Shown here one piece after another: positions 489 to 10,438 of a DNA stretch of 64,000 bases (position 1 is the stretch's first letter; each line of letters starts with the position of its first letter). The position numbers were made by a program, and so were the translations under genes. The DNA is taken from NCBI GenBank assembly GCA_052426225.1, contig JBNJNM010000011.1, positions 1,612,001 to 1,676,000 of the forward strand. The letters run 5' to 3'. Source of the stretch: Zancudomyces culisetae HAW-14-8. Taxonomy: Eukaryota > Fungi > Kickxellomycota. Below the pieces are notes generated by a model. The model did not search any database. It saw nothing but the letters and a program-made list of their open reading frames with translations, and had not been told where the DNA came from.

Positions 489-791
489 TTATTATGCTTC
501 ACTTATCCAGATACAATTATGTGTGTACCAATCTTTATTATAAATCGAAAATTCTTTCCTAGATACTATTTTTATCGATTAATCCATTACCTTAAAATTT
601 GGTAAAAAATTAAATCGATAAAAAGAGTGTTTAAATTTAGAAACTTTATACGTAATGATGTGTGTAATGACAGACATCACTGTATAATTTTTATAAAATA
701 AGTAAAACTAACTAAATAAAATAAATTTAAACCATATATAAACTGATGTCCCCTGTTTCCTGATGAATCTTTACCATCGTTGAGCTAGGTA
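489..791 (+). repeat. DIRS left terminal repeat (ITR core 505-791 plus unique 5' tip 489-504)
   Basis: 505-791 is the reverse complement of 4686-4971 apart from one substitution and a 1-bp indel near 543-547 / 4931-4934. Confidence 0.95.
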
Positions 792-851
792 CTCAACCAG
801 CTTATAAAAAATACATAGTATTTATAAAAGTCATTAGTTAAATTTTCAATA

Positions 852-1733
852 ATGAGTCAAAATGCAAACGTTACAGTTGAAGTTTTGCAACAGATTTTGG
901 AGAGATTATCAGCTCTTGAAAAACAAACCGCACCAAATGATCACATGTCAGTATCAGAAATCAGTGATTCAGCAAACATCACTGCTCCATCAATCGTTGA
1001 TGCAGTCGACGATGATTCAGTTGAAAACTTCGTGGTTCCCAGACCAACACCATCTGACCTGGTCATGTATCCAAAACTGCAAAAGGCGCTACCAACAGTT
1101 GAACAGGATTTCTTTTGGACACCACTGGCAGATGTCGAACGCAAGAAGTTTTACGCAGCCATCCCAAGAAACTCTGGCATGGATTATGAACCACCAGAGG
1201 AAAACATCAAGTTATCAGGTGACAATAAACGTACTGATGCAATGTTATATGACATCCAGTACCGTTTATCAGCCGTTACAAGACCTTTGGATTACTTCAT
1301 GCACGAAGCAATCCGTGACGGAGGAGCAGTCAGTGCCGAAAAACTTGCAGTTTTTATCAACTCAATCAGAGTTTTACTTGCGGATGTTGCATCCAGTATC
1401 ACGCAACAAAGAATCAAACTGTCATACAAAGCCTCAGGAGTACCATCAGATCCTCCAGAAATGGTTTCAACATCAAGGAAGCCTCTCGTGGACATACAGC
1501 AGATGCTCGAAGTTAAAGCAGCTGCAAATACATTGCAGCGTGCAACAAAAAATGTGCAGCAGAGAAGACCAAGATTCAACGCAACCAGGACCTTCCCAAG
1601 CATTCCGTTTCAGCCATCAGTTAACCAGAATGTTCAAGCAGAGCCGCAGCAGATCCAACAACAACGACAACACAAATCCGCTGCTACTGGCGGTAATTTT
1701 CGGTTTGCAAACAGCAGCAAACACCGAAAGTAG
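852..1733 (+). CDS. DIRS ORF1, gag-like protein (293 aa)
   Basis: First ORF after the left ITR, with an N-terminal coiled-coil (LQQILERLSALEK), a LYDIQYRLSAVTRPLD core and a basic/Q-rich tail. Confidence 0.8.
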   Translation: MSQNANVTVEVLQQILERLSALEKQTAPNDHMSVSEISDSANITAPSIVDAVDDDSVENFVVPRPTPSDLVMYPKLQKALPTVEQDFFWTPLADVERKKFYAAIPRNSGMDYEPPEENIKLSGDNKRTDAMLYDIQYRLSAVTRPLDYFMHEAIRDGGAVSAEKLAVFINSIRVLLADVASSITQQRIKLSYKASGVPSDPPEMVSTSRKPLVDIQQMLEVKAAANTLQRATKNVQQRRPRFNATRTFPSIPFQPSVNQNVQAEPQQIQQQRQHKSAATGGNFRFANSSKHRK

Positions 1734-4575
1734 GAGGGAGACTGAGGATGTTCCAGGAGGCTTGGATGCGCCTCACAGATCACAAATGGATACTCCAAGT
1801 GATCTCAGAAGGGTTCAGAATCCCCTTCAAAACGCATCCACCGACGGTCAAGCAGAAAAAACCGTTAGGTTACAACTTAAAAAAGCTTCCAGAAAAAGTG
1901 GTCGAACAGGAGATAGCAAACCTCCTGTCAAAGAAAGCAATAGAGGAAGCTTCATCCGCGCAGCCAGGGTTCTACTCAAATCCGTTTACAATCCCAAAGA
2001 AGAACGGAGGCACGCGGATGGTACTGAATTTAAGACCGTTAAATCAGTACATCCCACAGCGACATTTCAAGATGGAGTCGCTCACAACTATCTCCAGAAT
2101 GATCCGCAAAGGGGATTATATGACCAGCATAGACCTCAGCGATGCATTTCTACACGTATTGATCAACAAAACGTCCAGAAAGTATCTCAGGTTTACATGG
2201 GGCGGTCGCACCTACCAGTACAGAGTGCTCCCATTTGGTCTATCTTTAAGCCCACTAGTATTCACAAAAATACTAAAACCAGTACTGAAATGGGCCAGAG
2301 CTCGCGGGATACGAATGTCGAGCTACTTAGACGATTTGTTAATCTTAGGATCAACAAAAACAGAGTGTCTAAAGTTCACAAATATGGTTTTCAAGAAACT
2401 GGTGAAACTGGGATTCCTGATCAACCAGGAAAAGTCATCAATACATCCCAAACAATGTATTACGCATCTTGGGATGGACATCAACAGCCGTCAGATGAGT
2501 TTCAAGATACCCAAACAGAAACTCAAAGATTTAGCGAGAGAGGCATCCAGGTTGATACACAAAGGGTGTACAACACTGAAGGATCTGGCATCATTCATTG
2601 GCAAAACGCAGGCAGTGAATATAGCACTCAGACCGGGACGACTGATGAGCAGGAGGTTGTTAGAGCTCAAAAACAACACTCTGAAACGCACCACGGATTG
2701 GAGTTCACAAGTAACACTGAATCAGCCCGCACTGGACAATCTGACGTGGTGGAGGGACCATCTGAAGCAATGGAATGGTCTATGCTTCCTTCCGGAGATC
2801 CCAGAGATAGAAGTATATACGGATGCGAGCGACAATCACTGGGGGATAGTGATAGACAGCAATCAGTATACGGGGACATGGACACGACAACAGATGAAGC
2901 TCCCTATCAATGCGAAGGAATTATTAGCAATCCAGTATGCAGTGAAGCTGCCGCAGGTTCAGAGAAAGAGTGTTGTTGTATATTGCGACAACAACACTTC
3001 AATCAGCTACATCAAGAAGCATGGGGGAACCAAATCAGTGAATCTGATGGACATTTCGGAAGAAATTTGGAAACATTGCATCAGCAATGGCACTCGGGTT
3101 CAGATTCAGTATGTGCCATCAATACTGAATCCAGCGGATGCACCATCACGTTTAACAGCTCAAACAGAGTGGTCACTATCAGACAAGATGTTTCAGAAGA
3201 TACAGAAACAGTTTGGTCCACACGATGTGGACATGTTTGCCAACAACAACAACCACAAACTACCAACATTTGTGAGTTGGAAATGGACACCAGGAGCAGC
3301 GAAAACGAATGCATTCAATCATCATTGGAGCATTTGGACGAATCCATACCTTTGTCCACCATGGAATCTGATACAGAAAACACTACAGAAGATCAGACAG
3401 GACAAAGTATCAGCGACATTGATAACACCGTTTTGGAGGTCAGCACCATGGTATCCAGACCTCAAGAGCATGCTAATAGCTCCACCGATCAAGATATTAG
3501 CTCTACATATAATTCTGGATCCAAAAAGCGGAAAGCAAGTGACACTGATAAACAAAACATGGTCGCTTACGGCTTGGAAATTAAGCGCGCACGCCTTGAA
3601 AAAACGGGTTTAAAAGATTCAGTTATCACGTTAATGACAACTGGTAAACGAAATATGGCAAAACAAAAACAATATTACAACATCAAGGTAAAGTTTATTA
3701 AGTGGTTAGAGTCTGCAAAACTTGATATTAATAACGTTTCAGTTGTTGATGTTATCAATTTCCTTGATGAACATCGTATTAGTAACAATTTAAAAGTTGG
3801 TACTATAAAAAACTACAAGTCTGCTATCATCGATATTAATGCTGAATGGCGAACATTTAGCAGCGATATTTTGATGATTGATTATTTAAAACAGCTCGAT
3901 TCAACTTCAGTTCGATCTTTTAACAACCCTAACTACGATATTAATCCGATTATCGAACATATTAAAAATTTTGGTTCAAATTTTAAAATGAGCAAGCAAA
4001 ATTTAACAATTAAATTTTGTTGGTTGCTAGCAATTTGTGGATTTTTGAGACCTTCTGACATTGAACGAATCGATGATTCAAAGACGGAAATCAATAAAGA
4101 TTATGTTAAATTTGTTATTGTTGGACCAAAAGAAAAGCGAAGTGGAAATCCGATTGAAAAGGTCAGTATAATCCACGCACATAGCGACTATAAATTATGT
4201 CCTGTAGTAACATACAGAGCATATAAAAAACGCATTGCAACTTTTCCGAGTGTTGCAAATCATCCGATCCTCGATGGAGTACAATTGCACTACCTTATCC
4301 GCAACTTAAAGTATAACGACAAACACATTGGGGCACAACGAATCAGTAAACATATTAATTCATTGATGTCACTCTTGCAGTTGCCAGAAAGCGCAAAGTT
4401 ACCAAAAGCTCGAGCATTAGGATCTACTAGAGCTACAAAGCTAGGTGCGACATACGACGATGTTATTGCACAAGGATTTTGGGCAAGTAAAGGTATATTT
4501 GATACTTATTATCAATTATCACGTAGAACTCGTGAAAATTTAACTCAATTTATCTTGAACTCTGAAGCTACATAA
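862..4575 (+). CDS. DIRS ORF3: tyrosine recombinase at the C-terminus (about 3600-4575) of a 1237-codon frame overlapping gag and pol
   Basis: YR motifs GFLRPSD, PKEK, LCPV..Y..Y, KARALGST, GFWAS..IFDTYY. The true start codon is uncertain. Confidence 0.9.
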   Translation: MQTLQLKFCNRFWRDYQLLKNKPHQMITCQYQKSVIQQTSLLHQSLMQSTMIQLKTSWFPDQHHLTWSCIQNCKRRYQQLNRISFGHHWQMSNARSFTQPSQETLAWIMNHQRKTSSYQVTINVLMQCYMTSSTVYQPLQDLWITSCTKQSVTEEQSVPKNLQFLSTQSEFYLRMLHPVSRNKESNCHTKPQEYHQILQKWFQHQGSLSWTYSRCSKLKQLQIHCSVQQKMCSREDQDSTQPGPSQAFRFSHQLTRMFKQSRSRSNNNDNTNPLLLAVIFGLQTAANTESRRETEDVPGGLDAPHRSQMDTPSDLRRVQNPLQNASTDGQAEKTVRLQLKKASRKSGRTGDSKPPVKESNRGSFIRAARVLLKSVYNPKEERRHADGTEFKTVKSVHPTATFQDGVAHNYLQNDPQRGLYDQHRPQRCISTRIDQQNVQKVSQVYMGRSHLPVQSAPIWSIFKPTSIHKNTKTSTEMGQSSRDTNVELLRRFVNLRINKNRVSKVHKYGFQETGETGIPDQPGKVINTSQTMYYASWDGHQQPSDEFQDTQTETQRFSERGIQVDTQRVYNTEGSGIIHWQNAGSEYSTQTGTTDEQEVVRAQKQHSETHHGLEFTSNTESARTGQSDVVEGPSEAMEWSMLPSGDPRDRSIYGCERQSLGDSDRQQSVYGDMDTTTDEAPYQCEGIISNPVCSEAAAGSEKECCCILRQQHFNQLHQEAWGNQISESDGHFGRNLETLHQQWHSGSDSVCAINTESSGCTITFNSSNRVVTIRQDVSEDTETVWSTRCGHVCQQQQPQTTNICELEMDTRSSENECIQSSLEHLDESIPLSTMESDTENTTEDQTGQSISDIDNTVLEVSTMVSRPQEHANSSTDQDISSTYNSGSKKRKASDTDKQNMVAYGLEIKRARLEKTGLKDSVITLMTTGKRNMAKQKQYYNIKVKFIKWLESAKLDINNVSVVDVINFLDEHRISNNLKVGTIKNYKSAIIDINAEWRTFSSDILMIDYLKQLDSTSVRSFNNPNYDINPIIEHIKNFGSNFKMSKQNLTIKFCWLLAICGFLRPSDIERIDDSKTEINKDYVKFVIVGPKEKRSGNPIEKVSIIHAHSDYKLCPVVTYRAYKKRIATFPSVANHPILDGVQLHYLIRNLKYNDKHIGAQRISKHINSLMSLLQLPESAKLPKARALGSTRATKLGATYDDVIAQGFWASKGIFDTYYQLSRRTRENLTQFILNSEAT
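1697..3613 (+). CDS. DIRS pol: reverse transcriptase + RNase H + adenine-methyltransferase-like domain (first ATG 1748; frame open from 1697)
   Basis: RT motifs SIDLSDAFLH, LPFGLSLSP, YLDD; RNase H motifs YTDAS, INAKELLA, CDN, NPADAPSR; C-terminal DVDMFA...NAF...YLCPPW...W..APWY; VGGRL lies upstream of the first ATG. Confidence 0.95.
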   Translation, partial: FSVCKQQQTPKVGGRLRMFQEAWMRLTDHKWILQVISEGFRIPFKTHPPTVKQKKPLGYNLKKLPEKVVEQEIANLLSKKAIEEASSAQPGFYSNPFTIPKKNGGTRMVLNLRPLNQYIPQRHFKMESLTTISRMIRKGDYMTSIDLSDAFLHVLINKTSRKYLRFTWGGRTYQYRVLPFGLSLSPLVFTKILKPVLKWARARGIRMSSYLDDLLILGSTKTECLKFTNMVFKKLVKLGFLINQEKSSIHPKQCITHLGMDINSRQMSFKIPKQKLKDLAREASRLIHKGCTTLKDLASFIGKTQAVNIALRPGRLMSRRLLELKNNTLKRTTDWSSQVTLNQPALDNLTWWRDHLKQWNGLCFLPEIPEIEVYTDASDNHWGIVIDSNQYTGTWTRQQMKLPINAKELLAIQYAVKLPQVQRKSVVVYCDNNTSISYIKKHGGTKSVNLMDISEEIWKHCISNGTRVQIQYVPSILNPADAPSRLTAQTEWSLSDKMFQKIQKQFGPHDVDMFANNNNHKLPTFVSWKWTPGAAKTNAFNHHWSIWTNPYLCPPWNLIQKTLQKIRQDKVSATLITPFWRSAPWYPDLKSMLIAPPIKILALHIILDPKSGKQVTLINKTWSLTAWKLSAHALKKRV

Positions 4576-4666
4576 TTGTATCTGGATAAGTGAAGCATAA
4601 TAATATGTTTAGTTGAATGAAATGAAAACTTATTATTATTATGCGAACATCCAGATACAATTATGT
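4570..4666. repeat. Internal complementary region (ICR) of the DIRS element
   Basis: 4570-4603 is the reverse complement of the left end (489-522); 4601-4666 is the reverse complement of the right end (4954-5019). The halves share TAA (TTA on the other strand). Confidence 0.95.
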
Positions 4667-4685
4667 CCCACCCAATTCCCACCCA

Positions 4686-5019
4686 TACCTAGCTCAACGA
4701 TGGTAAAGATTCATCAGGAAACAGGGGACATCAGTTTATATATGGTTTAAATTTATTTTATTTAGTTAGTTTTACTTATTTTATAAAAATTATACAGTGA
4801 TGTCTGTCATTACACACATCATTACGTATAAAGTTTCTAAATTTAAACACTCTTTTTATCGATTTAATTTTTTACCAAATTTTAAGGTAATGGATTAATC
4901 GATAAAAATAGTATCTAGGAAAGAATTTTCAATTATAATAAAGATTGGTACACACATAATTGTATCTGGATGTTCGCATAATAATAATAAGTTTTCATTT
5001 CATTCAACTAAACATATTA
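4686..5019 (-). repeat. DIRS right terminal repeat (ITR 4686-4971 plus 48-bp right extension 4972-5019)
   Basis: Inverted copy of the left repeat; the extension pairs with the ICR. Confidence 0.95.
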
Positions 5020-5727
5020 AAATATATTGTATTTGGCTGTATTTGCACGCTTTGTAGGTATTTTGATTGTAGATCATAAGTGTTTTATAATTACTAATGA
5101 ATAATCATTCAAACGCGAAGTTACCATCTAGGAATCTTAAATTTGTTGGTGAACAAAAATAACGAATTATTGGGGTTGTAAAGCACTAAACCTTTAATAC
5201 CCTCTTGGTGTTTTTTTAAGTATACGTTTTAACCATCTAATAATATTTGAACTACTGTTTCACCCAAAGATATGTGTTTTTTTGGTTAATGTATTTCCGA
5301 AAGCCTGGTAAAAACTGTTTGAGAATAATGGTCAATATACTGAAGATGCAAAAAAATTCAAATCTTTGTTGTTATTCATTTGAAATACAGTAAAACGGAC
5401 TTTCTAGAATATTTTCATAAATGATTTGGCTGCATGGAAAAATACAGTAATTGAACACCCTTTTGAAGAAGCATATATTAATGATACCTAAATGGAATAA
5501 ACTTATTCAGATTAGTAAAACCAATGAAACCAAAAAGTCAAAAGTTAGTGCCAACAGGTTATTTAGTTTAACTAAATACACATACATTTAAGGGTAATAA
5601 TGTACAGTATAATTCGGTGTATTTAAATGTTTACAAACTAAAATAGAACATACATTCCTGTAGTTTAATAATATTTACCAGGTCGAATAAACCACAAATT
5701 TTACGGTTATAGTGTAAACTTTAAAAA

Positions 5728-7562: not shown

Positions 7563-10438
7563 TTAGTTAGAAGTAAGCGTGGTTGCTCTAGGGAATAGTT
7601 CAGTAGCCTTTGAAATAAAAGAGGTGTAAAGGGCTTGTAAATCAGCCAGGACAACATTGAGATTTTCAAGAACCTTTTTGTTGTTATCTTTAGAGGTGTT
7701 AATGTGCTTTGTGTCGAGTTTGCAAAGCTCAATTGCAAGATACAAGGAGTCCTTGATTGAAAGAATGTCAGAAAGCTCCAATCTTGAAGTAGAGTTTTGG
7801 GATGACAGGAGAGGAATAATGTTTTTGGAAAAGACAGAAAGGATGCGGGAATAAAGCGAGTCCAAGTGCACTGGAACTAGGGAGGAAGATGAAGAGGAGG
7901 TAAGAGCCTTTAGAGAATCTAGAACGGCGGAATAGTAATTTAGCTGCAGGCTAGTTGAGGTAGATATAGACGACGAAAGTGGAGAAGAAGTCAGAAAATC
8001 AAGAAGCTGGTCAAGCTTTTGTGCATCAGCGGGGGCAGGATAGCAAGTAGCGAAATCGGTCTTTGCAAATGTGGCGGAAAGCTTGTTGGCATTGAGAGTG
8101 GAAAGAATTTTATCGAGCTGAGCTGAATATTGGGCGTCTGATAGGTCCAGCACAAGACTCAGAGCAAATAGAGAAGCGAACACGGCAAAGTAATCGCGAG
8201 AATCGGAATCAAACAGATTAGACGATGAAGCAGCATTGAACAGACATTGCAGGGCATCGGAGTATTTGCCTGTGCGGAAGTAAACAGCAAATGAACTGAG
8301 CCAGAGCTTTGGAGTCTTGAGATTTAGTTTTGAAATGGTAGAGAGAATAGGAGCGGCAAAGTCTAGAGGAGAGGAAGATTTTGCGTAAGGAAGGGAAAGG
8401 GCAACCTCATCCTCACTAGCAGGAACTGAAGAGGAAGAAGAAGAAGAGGTGGTGGTGGTGGTGGTGGTAGGTGTGACGGCAGGAGTATTGGATGTGGTGA
8501 TGTGTTTAGCCTTGAAACAGCGGTCATGCAAATAAACCAACCCGCCGAGGAAACCACCAACGGCTTCAATGTAAGATTTGCTGGAATCGTACATAGAATC
8601 TTCCCAACTCAAGAGATTCAGATAGGGTTTCAAAGTAGATTTTCTTAAGCAGTAAGCGTGAAAATCCAGCTGGTCGTCGTAGAATTCATTGTGGGCAGCG
8701 ATGACTTGATTGTAATGAACGAGAGCACGAGGGAATTTGTGCTTGTTTCTAAATGCGCGGGCCTTTTCTAAAAAGTACCAAACGACTTGCATGTCAACCA
8801 GTTCTTGCTTTTTGTGGACAGCATCGTCACGGATAAACAGTTGGATAGTCTTTTCAGCCTCTTTGACGTCTCCACAGCGCAGCAAATACTTGACTGTTTT
8901 AGTGTTAAGGAATCGGTCGGCCTTTTGGTCTACTCTGGCGACATTCATTGCATCCTTAGCCCCAACAAGATCCCCTTGATGCTTCAGTACTTTTGCTTTC
9001 AATACTTGCCACTCGGCCTTATCGTCTTGGTCAGCCTCTGTCTTTTCTATTATGTCTAAACTCTCTTTGTGCATTCCCAAATAGTCGTAATATTGCGCAA
9101 GGAAGTATTCAGACCATTGGCGCGCTTTTTCATTTGCCTGCTCGGTAATTCCTGGGTACTTTCCGGTCTCCAAAAGGCTTTTGTTGATTGATTCTACTAT
9201 TTCTCGCAGTTTTTTGCCTTTTTGTGTCTCATCCTTATTCTTATCCATAATTATTCCCTTAAGGTTCTTAAACAACGATGGAATTCCTTTATCGATCTGT
9301 TCTCTCAAATACTTTTCTGCTTCTTTGGAAAATTCCTCTCCAAATGTCACTTGCAGTATCCACTTCTGGATCGTATTTGATCTTGGATATTTTTCTAACA
9401 AATCCCTCAACGCTTGAACCATTCCTGGCTCTGGGCTTGCCTCCGCTTCGTCTTTCCACAGTGACAAACTCCTCAAGTATCCCTTCAAGTATTCCTCATT
9501 ATCGCTATTTCGCTCAACTAGACCAACATATACCCCCTTTGCTGCCTCATTGTTCCCCATTTTTTCGTAAATTCTGCCCTCGATCTCAGCGCTTGCTGTA
9601 TAATCCAGAATATCTTTCTTTCTCTTCTCTATGTTTTCTATTGCTTCTTCGTACTCTCCTGCCTTCTCCAGCATAAGAATTTTATACAACAAAAGCTCGC
9701 TTCTCTCTACTCGCTTTTCTGTAGTATCATTGGCAGCTTTATTTCCTCCACCTTCTCCATCAAGTGACGAGAGTGCTTGATCAATCACATCTGCTGATTC
9801 CAAATATTTGCCATTTAGCTGGTATGCCATCGATAACCCCAATAGATTTACTGTTGTCTTCCCTCCGAGCTCAACTACCCGAGTTCTGCTATCAATCAGC
9901 TTGTCGTTGAAATTCCTCGTGTGTGTTTGCAAATGTGCCAAATCTCGATGAATTTGCAAATTGTCTGGATCCCTTTTCAGCGATTGCATATAGCATCGTA
10001 TAGCATCTTCGTACTTTTTATCCGCCCGATATACCAACCCGTATATGTGCCAACTAATTCCACTGTTAATGTTGTACTTGAGCCCTTCCTTTACACAGGT
10101 ATAGCCTTCCTCTACTTTTCCAAGATTCGCTAAAAACAATCCCTTAAGTGCTAGCGTTTCTCCGTGTTTTGGACTCTTCTTGAGAATCTGTTCTGCCAGC
10201 TTTAGCCCTTTTTTGTGCTCGTGTGTTTCGAACATTTTCTATTTGACAGTTTACAAAAAACATTTTCATTTTGAATTTGAATTTGAAATCCAGTATACAA
10301 ATCTCATCCTACTTTGCTAATAACACCTACACTAGTACCGCAAAGATTTCAATCACAAAAATAAACTAGACTTACCAGTGCCTGGCGGAACATTGTTTGC
10401 CCTTTCAATGGCAGCTGATTTAGCGGATTATCACTCAT
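7563..10438 (-). CDS. NAA15: NatA N-terminal acetyltransferase auxiliary subunit (TPR); 2 exons (10438-10376, 10238-7563)
   Basis: YE/FE-x-KKGLK..HGETLALKGL, WHIYGL..RADKKY..AIRCY, DRFLNTK..KYLLR, DDQLDFHAYCLRK motifs. Phase-0 GTAAG...TAG intron joins MSDNPLNQLPLKGQTMFRQAL to KMFE. Confidence 0.93.

Follow-up and report, generated by a model that had tools for sequence, protein, structure and literature searches.

A recombinase reading frame open across gag and pol in a fungal clade of DIRS1-like elements, and a model for reading three proteins from one mRNA

In an intact DIRS1-like retroelement of the fungus Zancudomyces culisetae, the reading frame of the tyrosine recombinase (YR) is free of stops over the whole of gag as well as pol and, judging from its relatives, this whole-gag open frame is a trait of one fungal clade of DIRS elements. 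The reading that we favor, with a probability of roughly 0.7 for the model as a whole, is that one mRNA would be read in three ways, giving Gag from a first start codon (AUG1), Gag-Pol by -1 frameshifting, and a long YR from a second start codon (AUG2). The approximately 910–920 overlapped residues of this YR show no amino-acid constraint, and their frame would serve as a stop-free lane to the recombinase.

Structure and Class of the Element

The element lies within a window of 64,000 nt, the whole stretch of DNA that was analyzed, and its features are as follows.

491–5018, plus strand: whole DIRS1-like element, intact; ATT at both ends, beyond which the flanks of 9–10 other genomic copies diverge; repeats present
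491–522, plus strand: left terminus, complementary to the left part of the internal complementary region (ICR)
543–791, no strand: left inverted terminal repeat, 249 nt, 100% complementary to 4686–4934
852–1733, plus strand: ORF1, gag-like, 293 aa; AUG1 with A at -3; predicted helical hairpin
862–864, plus strand: AUG2, +1 start codon 10 nt past AUG1, with A at -3; the long recombinase is proposed to begin here
862–4575, plus strand: long YR reading frame, 1237 aa; about 910–920 unconstrained residues over gag and pol, followed by the recombinase
1695–1703, plus strand: candidate -1 frameshift site AAT_TTT_CGG in gag phase; the pol frame opens on the run's first T (1697)
1697–3613, plus strand: pol frame, encoding RT, RNase H, and Dam-like methyltransferase; VGGRL straddles the gag stop
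Pol motifs: DLSDAF 2132 and YLDD 2324 (RT); TDAS 2819 (RNase H); DMFA 3230 and PPW 3356 (methyltransferase)
3595–4575, plus strand: predicted tyrosine recombinase domain, SAM-like core-binding plus catalytic
YR domain landmarks: R in the 4048 region, LCPV 4195, KAR 4405, Tyr near 4507
4570–4666, no strand: ICR, left part 4570–4601, right part 4602–4666
4686–4934, no strand: right inverted terminal repeat, pairing with the left repeat
4954–5018, no strand: right terminus, complementary to the right part of the ICR

The inverted terminal repeats, ICR, and trinucleotide ends of the DIRS1 type are all present, and the YR stop (4573–4575) falls within the ICR. Membership in Ngaro, PAT, or VIPER was rejected, as it would need split direct repeats (A-B-A-B) where this element has inverted repeats and an ICR. 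At least nine full-length copies at 99% identity are found in the genome, and their dispersal, along with one end-to-end junction in L010, is consistent with transposition via RNA and ICR-templated cDNA.

The pol product matches Pfam RVT_1 (E = 6.8e-27) and RNase H-type families; its Dam methyltransferase match (E = 3.8e-5) falls below Dam's curated cutoff, and PF05869 is present in relatives. The identity of the YR was settled because a fold search matched Cre where sequence searches stayed weak: Pfam gave no confident match and a PDB sequence search was weak too, while the best Foldseek match of the predicted fold (model pLDDT 84.8) is Cre (E = 1.9e-7). On this model, 3595–4575 encodes a tyrosine recombinase domain, in which the alignment columns R, LCPV, R, W, and Y are invariant. 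ORF1 is described as gag-like from its position upstream of pol and its family-wide conservation; its capsid role is putative, and a fold search returned generic helical hairpins (Z < 8) with no specific match. A Pfam scan of the three ORFs detected no aspartic protease or DDE integrase. The element has in common with the DIRS1-like superfamily (DIRS-1 of Dictyostelium; fungal Prt1/PblDIRS1, RoDIRS1, and MciDIRS1) gag, RT/RNase H/methyltransferase, YR, inverted terminal repeats, ICR, ATT ends, and a long YR/pol overlap. The first-pass annotation had called this overlap typical of DIRS1 elements, which agrees with its report in all five fungal elements examined (PMC3266345).

The Open Frame in the Window and Across the Clade

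Gag, the long YR frame, and pol occupy three different forward frames. As first annotated, the YR frame runs without a stop from ATG 862 to the stop at 4573–4575 (1237 aa; open from 856), and the stretch claimed to be double-coded over some 2.75 kb measures 2,752 nt, with all three frames open over 37 nt (1697–1733). The codon pattern described in gag is also present: the nine NTA codons are always followed by C or T and the seven internal ATGs never by A, and A never follows the 11 CTG/GTG/TTG codons either. Gag has a single +1 stop, the TGA at 853, within the start ATG-A. In shuffles of codon order, the check that had been suggested, 11.2 +1 stops are expected and 0 of 20,000 shuffles were as low as observed; synonymous permutation gives an expectation of 6.6 (P = 0.0005).

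Three subfamilies of this genome carry a stop-free frame over all of gag (1239, 1224, and 1257 codons), with subfamily C known from match positions and open-frame lengths alone. The frame is also open over gag in the intact members of a 44-row clade (SH-aLRT 100) and in Phycomyces (1237) and Circinella (1275), and spans 1213–1314 aa across the three subfamilies, about 20 metagenomic elements, Phycomyces, and Circinella. Gag identity among the elements that keep it is 17–49%. None of 22 elements has a stop after AUG2, a count that overstates independence given that the elements are interrelated, and a sister clade of like GC has 11–13 stops in the YR frame over full gag. A check of intact relatives for +1 stops over gag, which might have overturned the open-frame claim, found none within the clade. 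The first-pass description of an unusual extension over gag is therefore right as to the frame, which is real, but the extension is not peculiar to the window element and marks a whole fungal clade. A first metagenome scan with a single protein as query gave no matches, and viral contigs yielded one distant RT as the sole match.

Published accounts of DIRS elements (PMC3266345, PMC5633606, bioRxiv 2021.08.05.455354) describe an overlap of pol and YR only, whereas in the window clade the YR frame takes in gag too and starts from an early AUG of its own. These three sources give no translation mechanism for DIRS elements, and no account of a gag-spanning YR frame was found in a literature search that had key DIRS reviews outside its range.

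Two Closely Spaced AUGs as Candidate Start Codons

The first +1 AUG lies 4–58 nt past AUG1 in 22/22 elements. With one element per lineage (n = 14), this early AUG gives a combined P of 2.7e-5, and the AUG-making T at NAY+G sites is preferred 18:4 near the start vs 91:104 later (P = 0.003). These AUG statistics are somewhat circular because they build on presumed 5' ends of the RNA and on gag AUGs picked by eye from alignments; in two of the 22 elements another AUG lies upstream in frame. A purine at -3 is found at AUG1 in 5/22 elements vs 17/22 at AUG2 (P = 0.0007). Where AUG1 is strong, AUG2 follows 4–16 nt away (6/6), and where it is weak, 7–55 nt away. In yeast, the measured range of AUG competition is ~17 nt (PMC9743702), and the pattern of AUG1 strength and AUG2 spacing matches this range. 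Among relatives, no AUG close to the YR domain is conserved; the in-frame AUG at 3559, upstream of the YR domain in the window, is missing from most of them, and a dedicated AUG before YR was rejected as not conserved. The earlier suggestion that a 1237-aa recombinase may be made by leaky scanning from a single mRNA is backed by this comparison, with its conserved early +1 AUG, start contexts, and absence of a conserved YR-proximal AUG.

Proposed Entry Into Pol and Possible Recoding From Gag

Retroviruses and Ty3/gypsy-type elements produce Gag-Pol by -1 frameshifting. The window element likewise has pol in the -1 frame and a candidate slippery site where gag and pol briefly overlap. An AUG at the pol start is absent in most clade members, with VGGRL spanning the gag stop; ATG 1748 was rejected and is probably not the pol start, given that the conserved VGGRL precedes it and that most relatives lack an AUG at this place. 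Inside the gag/pol overlap, T_TTT or G_GGA_AAC occurs in gag phase in 32/32 elements (odds ratio 9.7, P = 7e-13). A canonical X_XXY_YYZ heptamer is found in a minority (G_GGA_AAC, G_GGT_TTT) and the T_TTT tetramer in the majority, the window among them, whose N_TTT_C type is a non-canonical heptamer. In contrast to the retroviral and Ty3/gypsy-type systems, the site in this clade is mostly N_TTT_C, no conserved RNA structure was found 3' of it (pseudoknot-free folding, z +0.8 to -2.7), and the integrase function lies in the third frame and not in Pol.

An unlikely alternative makes recoding from Gag the route to YR: a +1/-2 shift, either close to the 5' end or on the U-run (UUU_CGN type), would yield a Gag-YR fusion, and AUG2 would be secondary. 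The window site reads TTT_CGG, and such a fusion seems to be made in the Rhizopus-type sister clade (RO3G_13025 locus L124, L066, L069/L074, L082), which shares the frame order, the VGGRL junction, and a gag-phase U-run at the pol opening. That clade differs in that its YR frame opens only about 230–420 nt before pol, just upstream of a U6-CGG site (TTT_TTT_CGG), with 11–13 stops over gag and no early +1 AUG. A shift at the gag end, however, requires no open frame over gag, most members of the window clade have CA or CC rather than CGN after TTT, and the early +1 AUG is statistically favored.

Constraint on the Overlapped Protein

The first-pass annotation had also raised a fourth product. In favor of reading the +1 region over gag as such a product or as a functional domain, about 290 codons stay open throughout the lineages, some stretches show a slightly lower four-fold divergence, and disordered domains can function with little sequence conservation. 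Against this, no residue is invariant in the +1 protein over gag, whose identity is 10–24%, and variants common to at least four copies number 0 synonymous and 16 non-synonymous in the +1 frame. Gag four-fold sites that are not at stop risk diverge 0.711 vs 0.702 in the single-coded YR tail (P = 0.87), although these sites are near saturation and weak constraint on the filler could escape detection. Reduced synonymous change and conserved new-frame residues, the hallmarks of viral overprinted genes, were not seen at this near-saturated divergence, no stop or signal divides the region from the remaining frame, and it has no Pfam match. Because the overlapped residues show no amino-acid constraint, a fourth product is not supported, and we consider it quite unlikely.

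It is very unlikely that AUG2 chiefly tunes Gag dosage, with the open frame sparing the RNA from nonsense-mediated decay and YR made otherwise. Proximal out-of-frame AUGs do reduce upstream initiation and trigger this decay in yeast (PMC9743702), but the frame closes exactly where the YR domain does, so that AUG2 ribosomes would make YR anyway, and there is no other conserved YR start. A supply of YR or pol by spliced or subgenomic RNAs is highly improbable: most members have CAG/TAG where gag stops, a possible acceptor, but this sequence is accounted for by the PVGGRL protein motif, AUG 3559 stands ahead of the YR domain in the window but is lacking in most relatives, and neither route requires 900 open codons. 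Finally, while GC-rich relatives expect only 2–7 stops in that frame, an origin of the open frame in base composition, gag codon use, or chance is scarcely credible and was ruled out by the shuffles (window P ≤ 0.0005) and the sister-clade control, set against zero stops past AUG2 in 22/22 elements.

A Model for Three Proteins From One RNA

In the three-protein model, a single near-full-length mRNA would be read in three ways. Ribosomes initiating at AUG1 (852) would produce Gag, and a fraction of these would slip -1 at the U-run (G_GGA_AAC in some relatives) just ahead of the gag stop to produce Gag-Pol, about 920 aa here. Ribosomes that pass or are competed away from AUG1 would initiate at AUG2 in the +1 frame, cross about 910 codons of poorly conserved filler over gag and pol, and reach the 3' recombinase. 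Selection would preserve AUG2 and a frame free of stops, and would not act on the sequence of the filler. The frames and their conservation, the positions and contexts of AUGs and slippery sites, and the missing amino-acid constraint are seen directly in the sequences, and from there AUG2 initiation, the frameshift, the single mRNA, and the fate of the filler after synthesis are inferences. A 910-residue unconserved tail on a recombinase would be costly, which counts against the model, and DIRS elements encode no protease to cut the filler off.

Closely spaced out-of-frame AUGs are found in the RNA virus TYMV (p69/p206). Another such pair is p26/p27 of PEMV2 (PMC6294492). These viral pairs and AUG competition in yeast (PMC9743702) share with the window element two long frames that overlap on one RNA and are entered from AUGs only a few bases from each other; a viral overprinted protein, however, is functional along its whole length, whereas the overlap in the window looks like filler before a 3' enzyme.

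The expression of DIRS pol and recombinase, and kilobase-long overlaps without protein conservation, had no explanation in the literature searched, which did not extend to key reviews. We put at about even odds a broader proposal, in which DIRS elements in general have their long unconserved overlaps as ribosome lanes. In the superfamily at large, YR would be reached by varied upstream recoding (in animal-type and Rhizopus-type elements, by read-through or by a shift where gag ends), and this fungal clade would have switched to a closely spaced second AUG, forcing the lane over gag and giving a cellular-genome retroelement with one mRNA, three frames, and a filler of ~910 residues on its recombinase. 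The model of three proteins from one RNA is testable, as comparison pinpoints AUG 862, the T-run at 1697–1700, and gag-silent +1 stops. These elements are mis-annotated by gene callers as hypothetical proteins of 830–1270 aa. They also offer a natural case in which about 2.75 kb of double coding is kept for its openness, and not for its sequence, across two fungal phyla.

Architecture of the Element

The DIRS element occupies positions 491-5018 of the window, has ATT at both termini, and combines inverted repeats of 249 nt with an internal complementary region; by the definition of PMC3266345, which is used here, it is DIRS1-like. Pol contains RT, RNase H, and Dam-like domains, and the final 326 residues of the long tyrosine recombinase (YR) frame are modeled as a Cre-like fold (pLDDT 84.8; Foldseek E=1.9e-7). 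Nine or more full-length copies, 99% identical, are present in the genome. A second subfamily matches AX774_g2394 of the gut fungus Zancudomyces culisetae at 98%, which places the host in that species or very near it. At the right ends of this element (5016-5021) and of copies L002-L009, A(T/A)(T/A) follows in every case, and the left flanks vary; the target may thus contribute a short, AT-rich core for crossover. In copy L010, the left terminus is fused directly onto a right terminus, the junction expected of a circle or tandem insertion. The host neighbors are the end of an ankyrin-like ORF (1-330, +) and an 890-aa TPR ORF (7563-10235, -), which may resemble the NatA auxiliary subunit.

The first-pass annotation described a YR frame running stop-free across gag and pol, with about 2.75 kb double-coded, and the computed frames agree with it.

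Reading frames of the element
852-1733, gag
862-4575, long YR frame from ATG, 1237 codons
1697-3613, open pol frame

The double-coded length is 2,752 nt, and all three frames are open over 37 nt. The avoidance of +1 stops noted at gag codon boundaries is likewise borne out: a pyrimidine comes after each of the nine NTA codons, and A never comes after an internal NTG codon. Codon shuffles of gag, as had been proposed, predict 6.6-11.2 stops in the +1 frame and make an open one rare (P ≤0.0005); the -1 frame of gag contains 18, an ordinary count.

Conservation of the Open Frame

In the same genome, subfamily B has a 1224-codon frame (pol 78%, Gag 48% identity), and subfamily C has a 1257-codon frame reaching back to the gag start (pol 54%, Gag 37%, from match positions only). 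In essentially every intact metagenomic relative (pol 41-52% identical), the frame is already open where gag begins, with complete products of 1213-1314 aa. Exceptions look like single frameshifted copies, such as L043, in which a one-base shift lies ~250-215 nt 5' of pol and both gag and the +1 frame are open upstream, with the +1-frame start (AUG2) at +10. The open-frame metagenomic relatives form one clade in a quick tree (SH-aLRT 100), and Phycomyces blakesleeanus (1237 codons) and Circinella minor (1275 codons), both outside that tree, have the same layout with pol 47-50% identical. Judged by these comparisons, of the kind that had been suggested as a check, the open frame over gag characterizes the clade. 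Its extension over the full gag, first described as unusual, is so relative to the sister group including Rhizopus, which has similar GC, 11-13 stops over the full gag, and a YR frame opening only shortly 5' of pol, but it is common to the whole clade.

Farther out, the start of pol is where the YR frame of most elements opens, in many cases right after the stop of a same-frame upstream ORF. In most of the distant elements (L081-L122), an upstream ORF in the YR (or pol) frame lies across one TAG, TGA, or TAA, often with G or C next, a candidate for stop read-through. NCBI gene models for Phycomyces and Circinella (L126-L129) begin at the gag ATG and cover the long frame, are untranslatable as plain ORFs, and are probably intron-patched mis-calls.

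Entry Into the Pol Frame

An AUG at the pol start is absent in most relatives, and the codons of a conserved VGGRL motif straddle the gag stop. Within the pre-stop stretch where pol is open, T_TTT or G_GGA_AAC occurs in gag phase in 32/32 elements checked, at ~10x the density in the rest of gag, and in this element and subfamily B pol opens precisely at the first T of AAT_TTT_CGG. Together, these slippery sites and the opening at the T-run point to a -1 shift yielding a Gag-Pol of ~920 aa. No conserved structure was found 3' of the slippery site in the relatives compared. At L125:1-6665, one of two back-to-back DIRS elements has gag and pol in a single frame (885-aa call), possibly because one indel has occurred at the slippery site.

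Entry Into the YR Frame

In 22/22 elements, the first +1 AUG lies 4-58 nt 3' of the gag AUG with no stop after it, and in 21 it is the very next AUG. Its placement is significant with a single element per lineage (combined P=2.7e-5), and the AUG-making T at NAY+G sites is preferred near the start (18:4 versus 91:104 farther along, P=0.003), P values that are generous because gag starts were picked by eye rather than from mapped transcription starts. A purine at -3 is found at 5/22 gag AUGs and 17/22 second AUGs. In 6/6 lineages with a strong gag AUG, the second follows at 4-16 nt; with a weak gag AUG the distance is 7-55 nt, a post hoc pattern. In yeast, competition between the first AUG and an out-of-frame downstream one extends to ~17 nt (PMC9743702); the pair here, both with A at -3 and 10 nt apart, fits such competition. 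No conserved AUG near the YR domain was found among the compared elements. The proposed leaky scanning to a 1237-aa recombinase on one mRNA gains from these features, with initiation itself read from sequence. Two candidate TATAAAA boxes lie shortly 5' of gag (803-809 and 823-829) and, if used, would give a very short leader, itself favoring bypass of the gag start (AUG1).

The YR could instead be made as a Gag-YR fusion by recoding. Most Rhizopus-type sister elements lack an early YR-frame AUG, and several (L124:4745-4760, L069/L074, L082) carry CAG_TTT_TTT_CGG just inside the opening of both the pol and the YR frame, a single site that may serve for a -1 shift into pol as well as a -2/+1 shift into YR. 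With AUG2 in place throughout the open-frame elements, such a fusion appears improbable here.

Constraint on the Overlapped Sequence

Gag retains a recognizable core at 17-49% identity, while the +1 product over gag has no invariant residue across the compared elements. Across eight matched pairs, four-fold sites where no change can create a stop show a divergence of 0.711 in gag and 0.675 in pol, against 0.702 in the YR tail, which is single-coded (P=0.87 and 0.27, respectively); these values are near saturation. In a less saturated test, variants common to at least four copies within this genome show an excess of synonymous changes in gag (10:6 synonymous to non-synonymous), in pol (19:15), and in the tail of YR (8:5). 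The YR frame shows no such excess where it overlies gag (0:16) or pol (9:25), and none of the variants creates a stop. By these measures, selection appears to act on the openness of the frame and not on the overlapped sequence; for the 910 overlapped residues, this excludes strong constraint at the amino-acid level, an exclusion that does not extend to weak constraint. The suggestion that the gag overlap encodes a functional fourth product fares poorly, given the lack of invariant residues, the 0:16 ratio, and four-fold sites as free as those of the tail, and is quite unlikely despite the conserved frame.

A Model for Translation From One mRNA

We favor, at a probability of roughly 0.7, a model in which a single mRNA would yield Gag from AUG1 and Gag-Pol by -1 frameshifting. 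Initiation at AUG2 would add a long recombinase, whose N-terminal 910 residues would be a lane needing only to stay open. Dosage control with NMD avoidance would also concern an open frame, and is very unlikely. Splicing or a subgenomic RNA would supply the YR separately, and looks remote against an open frame kept back to the gag start. Composition is barely credible as its source given the shuffles and the GC of the sister group.

The long overlap in DIRS elements has been described as pol-YR and recorded for fungal elements (PMC3266345, PMC3783388, PMC5633606, bioRxiv 2021.08.05.455354), and the passages found of an experimental DIRS-1 study leave translation of ORF2 and ORF3 unaddressed (PMC7192593). 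The literature covered yielded nothing relevant that links DIRS elements to leaky scanning, to frameshifting, or to a triple overlap. Since a Phycomyces element has this layout, earlier work such as the founding Prt1 papers or the Goodwin/Poulter reviews may have drawn the overlap over gag. In sum, the open frame is real and conserved, in an element that belongs to a known superfamily, and the three-frame translation model proposed for it is concrete and testable.
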